64,000 nt of DNA from Lepidodermella squamata (taxonomy: Eukaryota > Animalia > Gastrotricha): positions 3,162,001-3,226,000 of the forward strand of contig JBLDXI010000017.1 of the NCBI GenBank assembly GCA_047495785.1, in the 5' to 3' direction. Positions 30,594-38,067 of the stretch are shown one piece after another. Position numbers and translations under genes: made by a program. Numbering within the stretch: the first letter of the stretch is position 1; each line of letters opens with the position of its first letter. The notes under the pieces are model-generated. The model had not been told where the DNA came from and searched no databases. It saw nothing but the letters and a program-made list of their open reading frames with translations.

Positions 30594-33500
30594 ATGAAGA
30601 GGTAAATCAACACCTTACATGGAATGGCCAATCTCCGCCTGTTGGCAGGCATACCGTCTTTGTGACAGACCTGAAGATCAGGTTTCGTTTTCTTTCACGA
30701 CATGGCGAGCATTCCACAAAAGTACCCAGGTGTCCCGCAAAAGTGATTCAGATCCTTTGAGAATAACAAAGGAGTCTAATTTTTCCTTTGTTATTCCAGT
30801 CTACAACTCAATTCTCTGATTATAATTCAAATTACTGTGCTCAATTTTTGTAGAGCTGATTTTTATTGGATGGAAAAAGCGAGAGTCGCAGTTAATTCCC
30901 TATCCGACAACTCATTAACTCGATTGCCTCAACTGGTAAGCAAATTATTTTCGCTCATTTTCATCATGCTTTTAACTATCTATGCAGGTCGAATTGTTGA
31001 GGAAATGTGTGACGGAAAACACTATTCTATGCCTTAGTCGCTCGCAAGCCAAATTGTTTGCCATAGTGATCACATGTCGGCATTTTGGAGCCCAAGTTTT
31101 CTCACCCGATCGAAAATCCGACAAAAATGCGAAATTTATCGTCATTGTATCCGATTCAGCGGATACTGATTCCTTGGTGTCATGCATGAATGTTCACTCG
31201 AGCTATAATGTTTTGCAATGCTGCAACACAATTTCTTATTCGCTTGAATCGCTTAGGGAGTATCACGTGTTGATTTTGAACTCATCGACAATTGCTAAAT
31301 CGCTTCGTGAGAAAGTTTTAACATTCAATGATATCTGTCTCCTGGTATTTAACGAGTGCCATTTGGGACTCGTTGACGACAATTGGAACCAAGTTCTCCA
31401 GCAATACAAGTCTTTGAATGGCTCGCAGAATCGTCCATTAATAATGGCAGTAACTACCGTCCTCAGCACGATGTATATCGAAGATTCTCACAAGTTGGAA
31501 CAGTTTCTGACGGACTTGGGAAAATTTTACTGTGCCAACATCAATGTTGACCGTACTATGTTATCATCGAAATATTCGACCGATTCAAAACTGAAGGAGC
31601 AGCTGATGGTGTGTAATCAAACGGTAGATGACGTCCGCCTTGATCTGGAGAATAGAATCGAAGCATTGATCATTCCACATGCTGAAATGATGAAGCGATA
31701 TTGCCCCGCGCTTTCTTCTGCGGTGGATACAGTTTCTTTTCCTGATGTCATTGGGGCGGCGAAGATTTGTTACTCAGCAGTAATGGCCGTTCACGAGGTG
31801 CTCAAAGAACTTGGTCCATTTTGTGCGGCTAAACTTGCCGAAAATTTTATCGACCAAATTGAGCAACACTACTCTTGTCACGTGCCTGATGCTGATGCTC
31901 GCAAAATGCTTGCTATCGGATCAACAGCTCTGCGTCAAGTCAGCCAGATCGTTGATGCGTACTACAAGGCTAACGTTATATGCTTGGAAGATATAATTCC
32001 GCTTGTCCCTAAAAAAGTCATGGCATTCCTGACTGAATTTAAAAAGTGGATGCCTAAAATTGACTTTAAAATTACACCAGCCTCCACATTGCCTTTCGAG
32101 GAGAACAAGAAAGGAGGCAAGAAAGGTAAAGGTGACGATTCGGATACTGATGATGATGACGACTTTGACGACGATTTTTCTGACGATATGAGCTCGGATT
32201 CTACGGATGGAGGCGCTGGCAAGGGTGTTGGTTCCGACATGCCAGGTTGCACACCAGTCGATCCTCACACATTTCGTAGGCACAGACGGCAGGCTAATAT
32301 TAGAATGATGAAGCAAATCATCGAGGGAACTGCTTTATCAGCTCTGGTAATTGTCAAAACGTCATTCGAAGCTTATGCCCTTGCCGTATTGATTGACGAA
32401 ATCTGCAAATACGACGGTGATTTGTTTTTCCTAAAAGTCGGCCACTATGCCTCGCTGGCGTTGCAAGAAAGCTCGGCGAAATCCCTTCTTCTGGCTCCAC
32501 CGGCTCGGCTTTTCCTCAAAGTTTGCATAGATTCTTTCAATCATTTGTATATTTATGAAATAATTTCTAGTACCAATCGAACGTGCTTCATCGCTTCAGA
32601 CAGCGACGTCTCAATGTTCTCGTTACAACAGACCTTCACGGGACATCCGTCACTCTGCCTCCGATAAATCACGTTGTTCGACTGAGTGTACCCTTTCCGT
32701 ACGAAAGCTACATCGGGTCGAAATCGTTTTGCCAAACCCAAAATTCAGTCATGACGGTGATTGTTGATGAAAAGTCCGCTGACAGCACTCAATCAATGAT
32801 TCAGGTCTATCGCGACACTGAAAATGTGCTATCAAGTCAGTTTTTTGTCGTTTGCAAAATTTTAATCAAAAGCTATATTTTTCAGGCCATTGCGTGGCAG
32901 CAAATTTACCAATCGAACTTCCAAGCCTTGAAACGTCGTTAAATACATCAAATAGCGAAGCTAGTCGGCCAAAAGCAACTGGAAAAGACAGTCAGTTGAT
33001 TCCGCCGTTTTACCCAACTGGAAGTGCTAAAGATTCAGCGAAAGTCACATCTGATAATGCTATTATGATTGTGAATCGTTATTGTGCCAAGTTACCCAGC
33101 GATGTGTTCACTCGCCTGACCAGTTTGTCTGAAGTCGAAAATATGCCGCCAGAAAACGGAGGCGCGGACACTCAATACCGAGCAAACATCACGTTGCCCA
33201 TAATTTCGCCGCTGAAAACCCCGATTTACGGCAACGCGATGCCAACGCCGCTTCTAGCGCTGAAATCTGCTGCTGTTGAAACTTGCAAGATGTTGCATCA
33301 AGAGGGTGAAATTGACGACAAACTGAACCCGGTTACTTTCGAGGTATGGAAGTGTGAAGATTTGCGGCAGGAAGAAATGCAACTAGAAGCTGCCCCCGAA
33401 ACGACATCGAAGCCATCGAATAGCGGCGTTTCAGTTGCTAAGAGGAAGCAATCATATCCGAAAAAGTTTGCTCAAGCTTTGACGAGTGGGCCTGTGCTAT

Positions 33501-36500
33501 TCTCGAAAAATCAGCCCGAAGAAAGTAATGGCGATGCAACGGAGGTGGTTAGTGTCGAAGCTAGCCGACCATGCCCGCCTTGTCGGCTGTATCAAGTGAA
33601 AATGCGGCGATCTGAGGGTCCTTTCCTCACACTTGTAGATCGCGCTTACGACCCATCGTGCTGCCCTCGCCATTACGGCTTTATCACAACGGATGGTGCT
33701 ATTCCGAAGGTTCCTAATTTCCCGGTCTTCACGCGCTACTGCGATCTAGATGTTACATTCGAATCTCTTGGCGAAGAGTTGATTTTCTCTGAGCAAGAGC
33801 TTGATCTCATTCGATTTTTCCATCGCTACGTCTTCCACACGATTCTGCGAATCGAAAAAGACGTTCTGTTCTTCCAGCCGGAAAAGTCGCCCATTCAAAT
33901 GTTCATTTTACCGTTAACGTACGACACGGCTGACGGGAAACCAGCTATTGACTGGGATTTCATCAAGTATATCAAACATTTTGTGCCGACTGTGCCAGGA
34001 GGTCTTGGCATTGTTCTTCGCAAGAGCGGCGAGCGTTTTCATTGGGATCAGAGCCAATTCGAAGACGCGGTGGTCTACCGCTCTTACTGCGGCTTTGTCG
34101 CCAACGAGTTGTACTACGTCGTGAATGTTCGGTATGACTACTCGCCGAAAACGCCGTTCCCGTCGGATCAATACGACGATTTCGTGTCGTATTACGAAAT
34201 CAAGTACAGGCTGATGGTGACCAACACAACTCAGCCGTTGCTTGACGTCGACCACACGACAGCTCATCTCAACATGATTTTGCCGCGTCGATGCAGCGGA
34301 AAGCTCGTTCCGACAACAGATGGTATTAATTTATCATTATTGTTATTAAATTGAGAAACATTTCAGATTACTTAACTGGGAATCGAAAATTTGAGGCTAA
34401 AAAATTGTGCCTCATTCTAGTTAAATTTGGACAAACCGCCTTTTCACTTTTCTTGCGCTCGTCTAAGAAGGCTGTAAAATTGGGAAAAATTGAAAAATTA
34501 CCCATACCATCTTCACCTATTTGTGAAATCAAGGTAAAATGTGATCTGCACCCCTTTGTGTTCTGAATATTTCTAAGTTTTTCCCGATTATTAATTTTGT
34601 CCAAATAAGATCCTTTACGGCATTAAATCGGTCATTTGAAACACGATTTTAATCGGCTTATACTGATATTTTTCAGAGGAAAATGCGCAACGTCTTTGGT
34701 TTGTTCCTGAGCTGTGTGGTATTCACCCGTTTCCAGCGTCCATGTGGCACAAAGCCGCTTGCTTGCCTACGATTTTCTACCGCTTGAACAGTCTTTTAGT
34801 CGCTAACGAAACTCTTCACATGGTCAACTCCGCCCTAGGCCTGCCTGATCTGGCTGAGCCTATTGATGGAGTAATACCTGCCAAGGAGAAATCGCTCATC
34901 GAATATTCGCAGCTTCGAACCCATCAAATGGCGGCGATTGCGCAACAAGCGGCCGGAATAACGCATTGGCTATTGACCGAGCCGTTGCTGCAAAGTTCAT
35001 CAACCAGCGCGCCCGGTTACGGCGTTTGCTCTGACTGTGTTGTCGCTGTTGAATCGGTCGTTTTCAAAACGCTGTGGCTTTACTTCAAGCGGGAAGAACA
35101 AGAAGAAGGTCAGGGCGAGCAGACGCTGCTGTCCTGCCTGATTTGCCACAATTTCTGCTACAGCGAATTCCACGCGATTGCGCACTTGCGTCACCGCCAT
35201 TCGTGGCTTTACACGCAACCGTGGTCGTTCCAACCCGACTCGCCCTGCCCGCTGTGCCAGGCAATGACCAAGGCCATGCAGCTATCACAGAGCCAGTCGC
35301 AACCGTGCGAGTTACCCATCTCCGCAATTCACTGCTCGTGCGGCGAGAAGGCAGGGTTGTGCAAGCACATCTCATCTCAATGGGACTCATTCCGCGCGAA
35401 AATCTCGTACTTATCAAAAGCCTGTGACCGGCCGCCTAACATGTGCGACATCTTGACAGCCCTCACCGCCTCGAACGCGAACGACATGTTCAGCTACGAG
35501 CGGCTTGAAACTGTGGGTGATTCTTTTCTGAAATTCACGGTAACCGCGTATTTGTACTGCTCGTGCCCTGGCGTTGAGGAGGGCAAGTTGACGTATATGC
35601 GGAGTCGGCAGGTCTGCAATTTGAACCTGTATTACCGGGGTCGCACCCGCGAGTTGGCCGAGCGCATGATTGTCTCGAAATTCGAGCCGACTGAGGCGTG
35701 GCTGCCGCCTGGTTACGTGTGCTTGAAAGGCAACGAATTGGATGAGAAAGTGTGTGACCCGAGCGCGATTTGGAAGGGCCCAGCCGAGGAGGCGAAACAA
35801 ACCAATGGCCACGCGAATGGCCATGAAAATGGGAATGGCAAGGCTGAGACGAACGGAAATGACACGAGTAAATTAGGCGATGACGAGGCCGAAGATGAGG
35901 AAGAGCAGAAGAATGAAGTGCCTGAGTTGCCGTCGACTCGCGGCCGAGGTCGTGGGCGGGGTGGTCGCCGTGGTCGGGGTAGAGGTCGCGGTGGCCGTGG
36001 TGGAGCTCAACAAGCTAAGCCAAAACCGCCGAAATCTGACGACAGTGACAGCGATGACGAAACAGTGGCTGTTAATTCGAAAACAAACGGAACTTCAGAG
36101 TTGACTACACTCCACACCCACCAAAGTCTATCGGACAAAAACATCGCCGATTGCGTTGAAGCGATTATTGCCGCGTATTTGGTAACAGCCGGGCATCAGG
36201 TGGCCCTGCAAGTCATCACCTGGTTCGGAATTAAGGTATTGCCCTTGATTCACTCTCTTGACTGCGGTCGCCCGGTCTCGGAGTGTGTAGACCGGTTACC
36301 TGATCCTGCCCCTCCGCTGTTGCCCGGGGCTGATCGCGAGGCGTTGATGAAGGTCTACTACAGCAATAATTTGGCGACCTTCGAATCGCTGATTGGCTAC
36401 CATTTCCGCGATAAAGCCTACCTGGTTCAAGCCTTCTGCCACGCTTCGTTTGATCTGTTCACGAAGCAGCGGTTAACAGATAGCTACCAACGTTTGGAGT

Positions 36501-37226
36501 TGCTAGGCGACGCTATTCTCGACTATTTGATCACGAGGCACATGTACGAACTGCATAGCCACTACTCACCCGGCGTGTTAACCGATTTGAGGTCGGCTCT
36601 CGTCAACAACAACATTTTCAGCTCGTTGGCGGTTCGGTGGAGTTTCCACCGATTCTTGCTCTACGCAAGCCCTGGGCTTTTCAATGTTGTCGTCGATTTC
36701 GTCAATCTCCACAAGCAGCACGGTTCTGATTTGGACCTAGAAAAGCTGGACGAGGTTAGTATTGACGTCTTTGATTTTTGTTTGAAAATAATATATTTTC
36801 TTACAGTTGGAAGAAAGTGGAGAAGCACTTGAATGTCCGAAAGTTCTCGGCGATATCTTTGAATCAGTCGCTGGGGCGATTTATCTCGACAGTGGACTCA
36901 GTCTTGAAACTGTTTGGCTCGTCTACTACCGCATGTTGAAACCTGTGATCGGTTTGTTTTTTCGCCTCTATCTCATTTTTTTAAATTTGAATAAATTAGA
37001 CGAATATACGGCGAATATTCCGAAATCGCCTGTCCGCGAGCTGCTCGAGAGGGAACCTGAAACTGCGCGTTTCCTTCGACCCGAGCGAACCATTGATGGT
37101 CGCGTGAAAGTTATCGTCAACGTAGTCGACAAGGGTCAATTCACGGGTGTTGGGCGTAACTTCCGCCTGGCCAAAAACGCAGCCGCTCGTCGGGCTCTTC
37201 GCCAAATCAAGTCTTCGAACAGCTAA
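30594..37226 (+). CDS. DCR-1: Endoribonuclease Dicer (degenerate helicase, DUF283, platform-PAZ, RNase IIIa, RNase IIIb, dsRBD); start uncertain (30594 or 30870)
   Basis: [14 protein letters not shown] (DUF283), [33 protein letters not shown], RNase IIIa [17 protein letters not shown], RNase IIIb [17 protein letters not shown], ds[23 protein letters not shown]. Confidence 0.96.
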
Positions 37227-37464
37227 TTCTAGCTTGCTCAAAAACAATAACAGCTCACATACTGCCCAGTGAAAATGTACAACGGTGACAGTATCTTTGA
37301 AGAACCCTTCCATATATTTGATCTAAACAAGCCTTCGAACTTGAACGTTGGCAATATTATGCAACACGATCTTGGCCGAAATTGATTCTCTCTCTAGTCC
37401 CGGCGTATTTAAAAATAAAACCGCCATTTTCATGTTTATTTTTCTCTAGTTCTTGGTTTTTAGT

Positions 37465-38067
37465 ATGCCAGTTATTAGACGAGAAATTCGATTCGAGGAC
37501 ATCGGGTTCGCAAATCAGGCTTTCGATCGTTATGACACGGGTAAAAAGGGCTACTTGACATTTGATGAGTTCAAACTCGCGGCCATTGTCGTCTACGGAC
37601 GGAAGTTGCTGAAAGAGGAGAAATCACGATTTTTGGACCAAGCCGATATCAACATTTCGAAAAATATTTATAGTCGTTAGTTCTTCAATTTCGTATCTAA
37701 ATTTTCGAAATTAATTCCGCGTTTTTCAATAAAGCTGCATTTTCGAGGGCCAGATTTCTTGAGATGATGCTGACACATATAGCGTCCACTCGGTCGGAGG
37801 AGGATGTTAGAGCTATGTTTTTAGCTTTGGATAGGAAATGTAAGTCGAATTTATAAATTCAGCATTTTGACCATTTTTATAACGTTCAATTCAGGTAAAG
37901 GCTATCTCGTTGCCGATGATTTGAAGCTCGCCTTCTCCGACGCGGCGCCTCATCTAGGTCATTCCCGAATTCCTGGCGAAGCATTTAAAGCCCTGGATGC
38001 CGATGGCGATGGCCGTGTGACATTTCGTGATTTTGAATTTATTATGTCTTGCAATCTCGAAAAATGA
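37465..38067 (+). CDS. EF-hand calcium-binding protein, EFCAB11-like
   Basis: EF-hands FDRYDTGKKGYLTFDEFK, LDRKCKGYLVADDLK and LDADGDGRVTFRDFE. Confidence 0.8.

Follow-up and report, generated by a model that had tools for sequence, protein, structure and literature searches.

Does the linker in front of RNase IIIa hold a structured, zinc-binding module in a Dicer of the gastrotrich Lepidodermella squamata, and if so, what kind of module would it be? The question is raised by a 64,000-nucleotide stretch of this genome (assembly GCA_047495785.1, contig JBLDXI010000017.1, positions 3,162,001 to 3,226,000 of the forward strand; hereafter the window), in which the plus strand at 30982–37226 is predicted to encode a complete, Dicer-1-type Dicer of five exons and ~1,912 codons. 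A sequence-only reading of the window had reported C2H2- and SWIM-type zinc-finger motifs within one open exon of this gene, and had proposed an acquired module that binds nucleic acids or a partner. Our analysis favours, as the overall best explanation, a lineage-specific and probably zinc-binding Dicer linker module. That the segment is a real, translated zinc module is the more probable part of this explanation, and any one specific role for it is doubtful.

A Cys/His module in the linker of two Dicers

Protein searches and folds were run exon by exon. The connector helix after PAZ lies at 34742–34810 (+), where it aligns to residues 1100–1142 of mouse Dicer (7zpi) and to the equivalent parts of other Dicers. 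The conserved N-terminal part of RNase IIIa lies at 35435–35857 (+), with its signature at 35498–35533; it matches Dicers in the PDB and shares 51–56% identity with other Dicers by tblastn. Between these two elements, translation reveals a Cys/His module at 35027–35368 (+), within a block (35003–35386) that aligns to a second Dicer described below. The module comprises four motif groups, all on the plus strand and all in one open frame (translation of 34700–35500): a first CxxC knuckle, CSDC (35027–35038); a C2H2-like core, CLIC-x12-H-x4-H (35135–35200), with an extra Cys at 35156–35158 and the H-x4-H at 35183–35200; a third CxxC knuckle, CPLC (35246–35257), with a conserved P-W..D motif just before it; and a C-x-C-x6-C-x-H cluster, CSC-x6-CKH (35333–35368), which had been read as a SWIM motif. 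Homology to human and mouse Dicer restarts directly after CKH. The translation and the mouse Dicer alignment thereby bear out the placement of these motifs in a single open exon between the connector helix and RNase IIIa, and the block occupies the variable linker and nothing else. Since this linker is not unusually long (~194 residues, compared with 342 in the Dicer P0010), the module is a replacement of linker content rather than a net insertion.

Composition-preserving shuffles of the 208-residue window linker reproduce the C2H2 pattern in 0.28% of cases, at least three CxxC motifs in 1.1% and the SWIM pattern in 2.0%, and Cys makes up 5.7% of this linker, whereas the median for 71 other Dicer linkers is 2.1%. 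Because the motifs are rare in shuffles and the linker is enriched in Cys, the Cys/His pattern exceeds chance expectation. The core spacing, C-x2-C-x12-H-x4-H, lies within the C2H2 range of C-x2-4-C-x12-H-x3-5-H.

The evidence that carries most weight comes from elsewhere in the same genome. A search with the RNase III part of the window gene led to a paralog on contig C7 and, more weakly, to a third RNase III locus on contig C55. The C7 paralog, whose corresponding exon lies at G000:C7:2735967–2737694, is a full Dicer: its domains include Helicase_C, Dicer_dimer and platform as well as both RNase III domains. In the stretch from the connector helix to the RNase IIIa signature it reads CRAC...CRICAKC-x13-H-x4-H...W-P-S-F-x-D-x2-CQFC...C-x3-C-x6-C, with a C2H2 spacing of C-x2-C-x13-H-x4-H when counted from the second and third Cys. 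In a pairwise alignment the two modules are 25% identical overall, with nine Cys and two His invariant, among them both Cys of the first knuckle (CSDC in the window, CRAC in the paralog). Identity is concentrated in the Cys residues: the paralog shares 9 of the 11 window Cys, compared with 21 of the 117 remaining residues (18%; Fisher p 3e-5); seen from the paralog, 9 of 10 Cys are identical. Spacing to the catalytic domain is also preserved, with the last Cys of the third CxxC (CPLC in the window, CQFC in the paralog) 81 residues before the RNase IIIa ERLE/ERFE motif in both genes. The C-terminal cluster is kept as three Cys, C-x-C-x6-C in the window and C-x3-C-x6-C in the paralog, and its His is replaced by Arg. 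Together, the eleven aligned Cys/His residues and one near-aligned Cys make up 12 candidate ligands, which would suffice for two to three zinc sites.

The ordered arrangement CxxC..CxxC..H-x3-5-H..CxxC arose in 62 of 200,000 shuffles of the window linker (3e-4); for the paralog linker the count was 7 of 200,000 (3.5e-5). Compared directly, the two modules match by BLASTP at E 0.007, their global alignment score corresponds to a z of 3.4, and a module profile matches only these two loci in the 121-Mb genome. These comparisons confirm the observation behind the proposal of an acquired module, in that the divergent second Dicer keeps the ligand pattern at the same position; judged from the sequences, the module behaves as acquired and conserved.

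Two further features were seen at these additional loci. An intron of ~2.6 kb in the RNase IIIa of the paralog (L008 3200–5750; G000:C7:2737700–2740250) contains minus-strand open reading frames (ORFs) with a gag-like CCHC knuckle, which probably represent a retroelement fragment. The third RNase III locus (L005; G000:C55:1121077–1121262) matches the RNase IIIb part at E 4e-6 and gives no match to the module profile; it is possibly Drosha.

Other Dicers did not yield the module. The full pattern was present in 0 of the 157 other Dicers compared, and a profile of the two modules matched none of these 157 better than E 0.45. Conservation of the Cys and His residues, for which the sequence-only reading had proposed an alignment with Dicers of related taxa, is seen in the paralog, with nine Cys and two His. 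Its statement that this linker has no annotated zinc fingers in human and fly Dicer agrees with this comparison and with the Dicer reviews searched; zinc goes unmentioned in a review of Dicer structure from 2023 (PMC10328071). A phmmer search of 1.84 billion representative proteins with the connector, the module and the start of RNase IIIa found no module homologue, the best match reaching 78 bits and all matches being accounted for by the connector helix or RNase IIIa. The same negative outcome came from word-indexed searches of 5.8 billion clusters, limited to proteins of 383–1,218 residues; full-length spliced Dicers lie beyond the reach of these searches, one of which was swamped by low-complexity words. 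No module homologue was found in JGI metagenome contigs, scanned with the protein and with the paralog alignment. Among PDB sequences the two-module profile matched only eS27, at E 0.033 and over the third CxxC, and the 56-residue core alone matched nothing. In the nearest library relative of the paralog, the Logan transcript P0149, the linker is short and acidic and lacks the module.

Linkers with 5.6–10.5% Cys do occur at the same place in several Dicer fragments from Logan, JGI and ENA (P0008/P0155, P0024, P0005, P0004 and P0045), and they are unrelated in sequence to the window module. Since other Dicers are also Cys-rich here, yet with unrelated sequences, Cys-rich insertions may have arisen at this linker repeatedly.

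To place both Dicers, the RNase IIIb region was used for a quick maximum-likelihood tree. In it the window Dicer belongs to a well-supported group of 24 sequences, scallop, nemertean and bryozoan Dicers among them, and the paralog sits on a very long branch (4.1) paired with P0149. The approximately unbiased (AU) test does not reject the two as sisters (p 0.817), and constraining the tree to make them sisters improves the log-likelihood by 26 units over the quick free tree, a result for which long-branch attraction could be an alternative source. The simplest reading would be a single acquisition of the module before a duplication within this lineage; as an alternative, the paralog would be an old Dicer-2, with the module copied between the genes.

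Fold, zinc-finger class and competing explanations

Two AlphaFold runs on the two-sequence alignment gave models that agree in their secondary structure. Both show a helix and two strands that end at the CxxC, then a third, short strand, the H-x4-H helix and a second short helix, followed by a further helix that starts at the third CxxC. The prediction thus places a β-hairpin and a helix over the C2H2 core in both models, at a predicted local distance difference test score (pLDDT) of 52–69 for this part. With an exhaustive structural aligner, the zinc-finger domain of SERRATE (3ax1) ranks first for the paralog model (Z 5.1, 66 residues) and second for the window model (Z 5.1, 58 residues), behind the archaeal ribosomal protein 6skg_Bo (Z 5.8). 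Below these stand ARS2 (Z 4.9 and 3.3), the ZBED2 BED finger and the fingers of TUT1, TUT4, SF3A2 and ZMAT5. For both modules, a language model gave zf-met, JAZ and C2H2 clusters as look-alikes, at 0.87–0.92 with low shared-feature counts. These leads from fold and profile point weakly to an RNA-type C2H2 finger of the zf-met/JAZ or SERRATE/ARS2 kind, none of them significantly.

Profile searches set a limit on the class names that can be given to the module. No Pfam C2H2 family reaches its gathering score: zf-met gives 10.3 bits for the window core against a cut-off of 21.2 (E 0.98), and zf-C2H2_4 gives 7.9 bits against a cut-off of 27, with an E of 8 for the paralog core. Because no C2H2 model reaches threshold, the C2H2 part of the sequence-only reading is supported as a conserved ligand pattern with the appropriate spacing, and as a pattern only. 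The SWIM part fell away: the His of the cluster is not conserved, the spacing of its CxC differs in the paralog, and Pfam SWIM gave no match at E ≤ 10 for any piece of the protein.

Several observations weigh against a folded zinc module. Its conservation rests on two paralogs of one genome, which stand apart in the free tree, and at least nine aligned identical Cys/His columns appear in 6.9% of shuffles, since aligners reward Cys–Cys matches. Pfam searches with six pieces of the protein place nothing of the module above threshold. The AlphaFold models have a mean pLDDT of 45 and 48, and Foldseek against the PDB returned nothing at E ≤ 0.001. All structural Z-scores lie below ~8, a level that the aligner calls common without a true match. 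Isoelectric points (pI) of 5.9 for the window module (mildly acidic) and 8.1 for the paralog module (mildly basic) give no argument for nucleic-acid binding. That the segment binds zinc, folds and is expressed is itself inferred.

The alternative that survives best, although unlikely, is that the module is a known RNA-type finger, U1/matrin/JAZ or SERRATE/ARS2, fused in cis and contacting the substrate or the RNase III centre. The structural ranking of SERRATE and of the ARS2, ZMAT5, SF3A2, TUT1 and TUT4 fingers speaks for it, as do zf-met as the best Pfam lead and the zf-met/JAZ look-alikes. The predicted order of helix, three strands and helix-kink-helix also fits the published SERRATE finger, a β-β-β-α fold with a helix before and a helix-kink-helix after it that was compared there with ZBED2 (PMC3177193). 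DCL1 of plants is bound by the SERRATE finger, which stimulates its cleavage without a need for RNA binding (PMC3799435), an action on a Dicer in trans. Each of these signals, however, lies below significance, the models are poor and the window module is acidic. The spacing between the two His is x4, where x5–6 is typical of U1/JAZ fingers. Likewise, the Lys/Arg one helical turn after the second His, cited as conserved in fingers specific for double-stranded RNA (dsRNA; PMC3177193), is absent from both paralogs. With zf-met below threshold in addition, the core lacks these sequence marks of a dsRNA-type C2H2 finger.

A chance stretch rich in Cys and His, lying in a disordered and fast-evolving linker and neither folding nor binding zinc, is a less probable account. 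The Cys-rich linkers of other Dicers, the missing profile matches and the low AlphaFold confidence would be expected under it. It does not explain why a paralog with otherwise only ~25% identity preserves the ordered pattern, at the same distance from RNase IIIa, nor its rarity in shuffles of both linkers and its absence from all 157 other Dicers, and we rejected it on these grounds.

Very improbable is the idea that the segment is absent from the mature protein, as an unannotated intron or an alternatively skipped stretch. In its favour, a transcript-derived protein that includes the segment was not found in the protein libraries searched. The composition of the segment, however, is that of coding sequence. 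Codon log-odds were trained on the homology-supported parts of the window gene, which themselves score +0.18 to +0.47; the segment scores +0.29 to +0.31 per codon in frame, and its two other frames are negative. Its GC content at third codon positions (GC3), 0.71–0.72, is the same as that of the adjoining RNase IIIa. For the Cys/His module itself the two values are +0.31 and 0.72. The true introns of the gene, in contrast, have 34–43% GC, negative codon scores and clear splice signals, whereas donor-like hexamers and polypyrimidine-AG acceptors are absent from 34853–35434. Codon usage, GC3 and missing splice signals thus argue that the segment is translated, in a frame that stays open over 2,078 nt. 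The strongest argument for an exon is indirect, namely that the second gene also keeps the frame open and preserves the same ligands, as would be expected from constraint at the protein level. The intron reading was rejected on this combination of open frame, coding-like composition, missing splice sites and constraint in the paralog.

Finally, a domesticated BED finger from a hAT-like transposon inserted into an ancestral Dicer linker exon is equally improbable: the BED signature is C-x2-C-xn-H-x3-5-H/C with upstream aromatic residues, which the C-x2-C-x16-H-x4-H of the paralog would fit, and ZBED2/ZBED1 appear in the structural comparison (Z 4.3, 3.7 and 2.9, the first two for ZBED2), but these scores lie within the noise range, Pfam zf-BED gives no match and the module profile finds no further copy in the genome.

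Structure and type of the window Dicer

The exon model of the gene was derived from tblastn matches of full-length library Dicers together with splice signals read off the sequence. Exon 1 (30982–32520, +), an ORF in translation, encodes the N-terminal part of the helicase and the partner-binding domain (Pfam Dicer_PBD, E 1.7e-8, with a weak DEAD match). The tblastn matches of full-length Dicers begin here, at 30979–30988, and the exon ends at a donor, GTTTGC, at 32521. The C-terminal part of the helicase follows in exon 2 (32571–32835, +), onto which residues 443–530 of P0040 align at 32574–32831, and which is bounded by the acceptor TTTCTAG and the donor GTCAGT. Exon 3 (32886–34322, +) carries the dimerisation domain (DUF283; Dicer_dimer, 1.3e-19), the platform (8.5e-20) and PAZ (6.6e-7), and its donor GTATTA lies at 34323. 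Exon 4 (34677–36754, +), preceded by the acceptor TTTTTCAG ending at 34676 and followed by the donor GTTAGT from 36755, is 2,078 nt long and open throughout as a 721-residue frame; it encodes the connector helix and the Cys/His module, then RNase IIIa, which contains a low-complexity insertion, and the larger part of RNase IIIb (Ribonuclease_3, 1.8e-30). After a last intron of 52 nt (36755–36806, acceptor CTTACAG), exon 5 (36807–37226, +) completes RNase IIIb and adds a double-stranded RNA-binding domain at the C terminus (dsRBD; Dicer_dsRBD, 4.3e-37) and the stop codon.

Pfam matches lie above the curated cut-offs on exons 1, 3, 4 and 5, with two RNase III domains on exon 4, and RNase III signature motifs are visible in the translations of both catalytic domains, IIIa and IIIb. 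Helicase, DUF283/dimerisation domain, platform-PAZ-connector, RNase IIIa and IIIb, and dsRBD are thus all present, and matches to Dicers in the PDB reach E 4.8e-84, in full agreement with the earlier naming of the protein as a Dicer. This is the same complete domain order, from helicase through dsRBD, as in animal Dicer-1 (human DICER1, Drosophila Dcr-1), and the RNase III part scores 286 bits against fly Dcr-1, 267 bits against mouse Dicer and 145 bits against fly Dicer-2.

The two Dicers of this genome differ in their helicases. In the window Dicer motif I is degenerate, SRSQAKL standing in place of the expected GxGKT, and motif II has the form NECH (30982–31400). Given these degenerate motifs, the helicase is probably inactive as an ATPase. 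The C7 paralog, in contrast, has an intact GTGMGKT (motif I) and DECH (motif II; L006 3468–4020). The contrast suggests a split in this animal between a microRNA (miRNA)-type Dicer, in the window, and a small interfering RNA (siRNA)-type Dicer, on C7. The finding of two Dicers agrees with a study of RNA interference (RNAi) proteins in L. squamata, which noted possible DCR-1 duplicates, annotated Dicer by Pfam domains only and reported no zinc finger (PMC6468455).

Apart from the Cys/His module, the low-complexity insertion in RNase IIIa contains an RG/RGG box of 22 residues (35939–36004, +), flanked by acidic and Asn/Gly-rich runs, a possible motif for arginine methylation or RNA binding within a Dicer. 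Just 3' of the gene, at 37453–38067, two short ORFs, from DADGDGRVTFRDFE in translation, resemble exons of an EF-hand protein.

Possible function and significance

In the mechanism that we propose, a translated mini-domain of ~115 residues would form part of the linker that joins the PAZ connector helix to RNase IIIa in both Dicers, the miRNA-type window enzyme and the fast-evolving paralog with its intact GxGKT/DECH motifs. It would consist of a C2H2-like β-β-α core, the CxxC knuckles beside it and a cluster of three Cys at the C-terminal end, would bind zinc and fold compactly, and would replace the usual acidic, unconserved linker. Such a module may have been acquired once, before the two Dicers duplicated. 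Stabilised by zinc, the mini-domain would rigidify the linker and offer a surface to a substrate or a partner.

The position of the linker gives this proposal a possible function. A figure legend in PMC3867540 places the segment between PAZ and RNase III next to the dsRNA distance ruler that sets small-RNA length. Because the module adjoins the dsRNA path from PAZ to the RNase III centre, its position suggests a docking surface at this ruler for an RNA substrate or a protein partner. As the charges of the two modules do not settle the matter, protein docking or structural bracing is as plausible as RNA contact. The module is unlikely to be tied to one substrate class, since it is kept both in the Dicer-1-type enzyme and in the paralog with the intact helicase. 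No result here points to chromatin, for which the sequence-only reading had suggested a link as an alternative to a change in substrate selection. A bolder version, also unlikely, is that gastrotrich Dicers took a SERRATE/ARS2- or JAZ-like RNA-type finger in cis, braced it with extra zinc knuckles and set it at the ruler. If true, the enzyme itself would, in both the miRNA-type and the siRNA-type paralog, take on a task that normally falls to a separate cofactor, namely to position the substrate or the catalytic centre or to set product length.

Known systems offer partial parallels. The zinc-binding dsRBD of fission-yeast Dcr1 reportedly mediates nuclear retention, going by the title of the work that describes it. 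This was the only Dicer zinc-binding motif to surface in our literature searches. It is placed at the C-terminal dsRBD (Barraud et al. 2011, cited in PMC8138440), and it is, like the present module, an add-on to the canonical Dicer domain set. Unlike that module, it does not lie between PAZ and RNase IIIa, and no sequence relation between the two was seen. A C2H2-type finger and an RNase III domain are also combined in one polypeptide in the trypanosome RNA-editing endonucleases KREN1–3 and mRPN1 (PMC3867540); these proteins are not Dicers, however, having a single RNase III domain and neither PAZ nor helicase, and no sequence similarity was detected. The SERRATE/ARS2 finger (3ax1, 6f7j) is the best weak structural match, acts in the same pathway and has a similar layout of helix, three strands and helix-kink-helix. 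It belongs to a separate protein acting in trans and has a single zinc site, whereas the window module stands in cis with extra CxxC knuckles, and the likeness is not significant, being derived from low-confidence models.

While the enzyme itself is known, what appears to be new is the presence of the module in both Dicers of this genome and in none of the other Dicers compared: in animal Dicer-1 and the 157 sampled Dicers the linker is unconserved and has no Cys/His module, whereas the window Dicer carries a conserved one with 11–12 candidate ligands. In model Dicers, this linker is treated as a dispensable, unstructured spacer. A folded zinc module in two functionally diverged Dicers would show that the spacer can host a structured accessory domain. 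If so, these enzymes would offer a natural experiment on how a Dicer measures and positions its substrate, or recruits a partner, without a separate cofactor, and the module would provide a concrete molecular character for RNAi in Gastrotricha.

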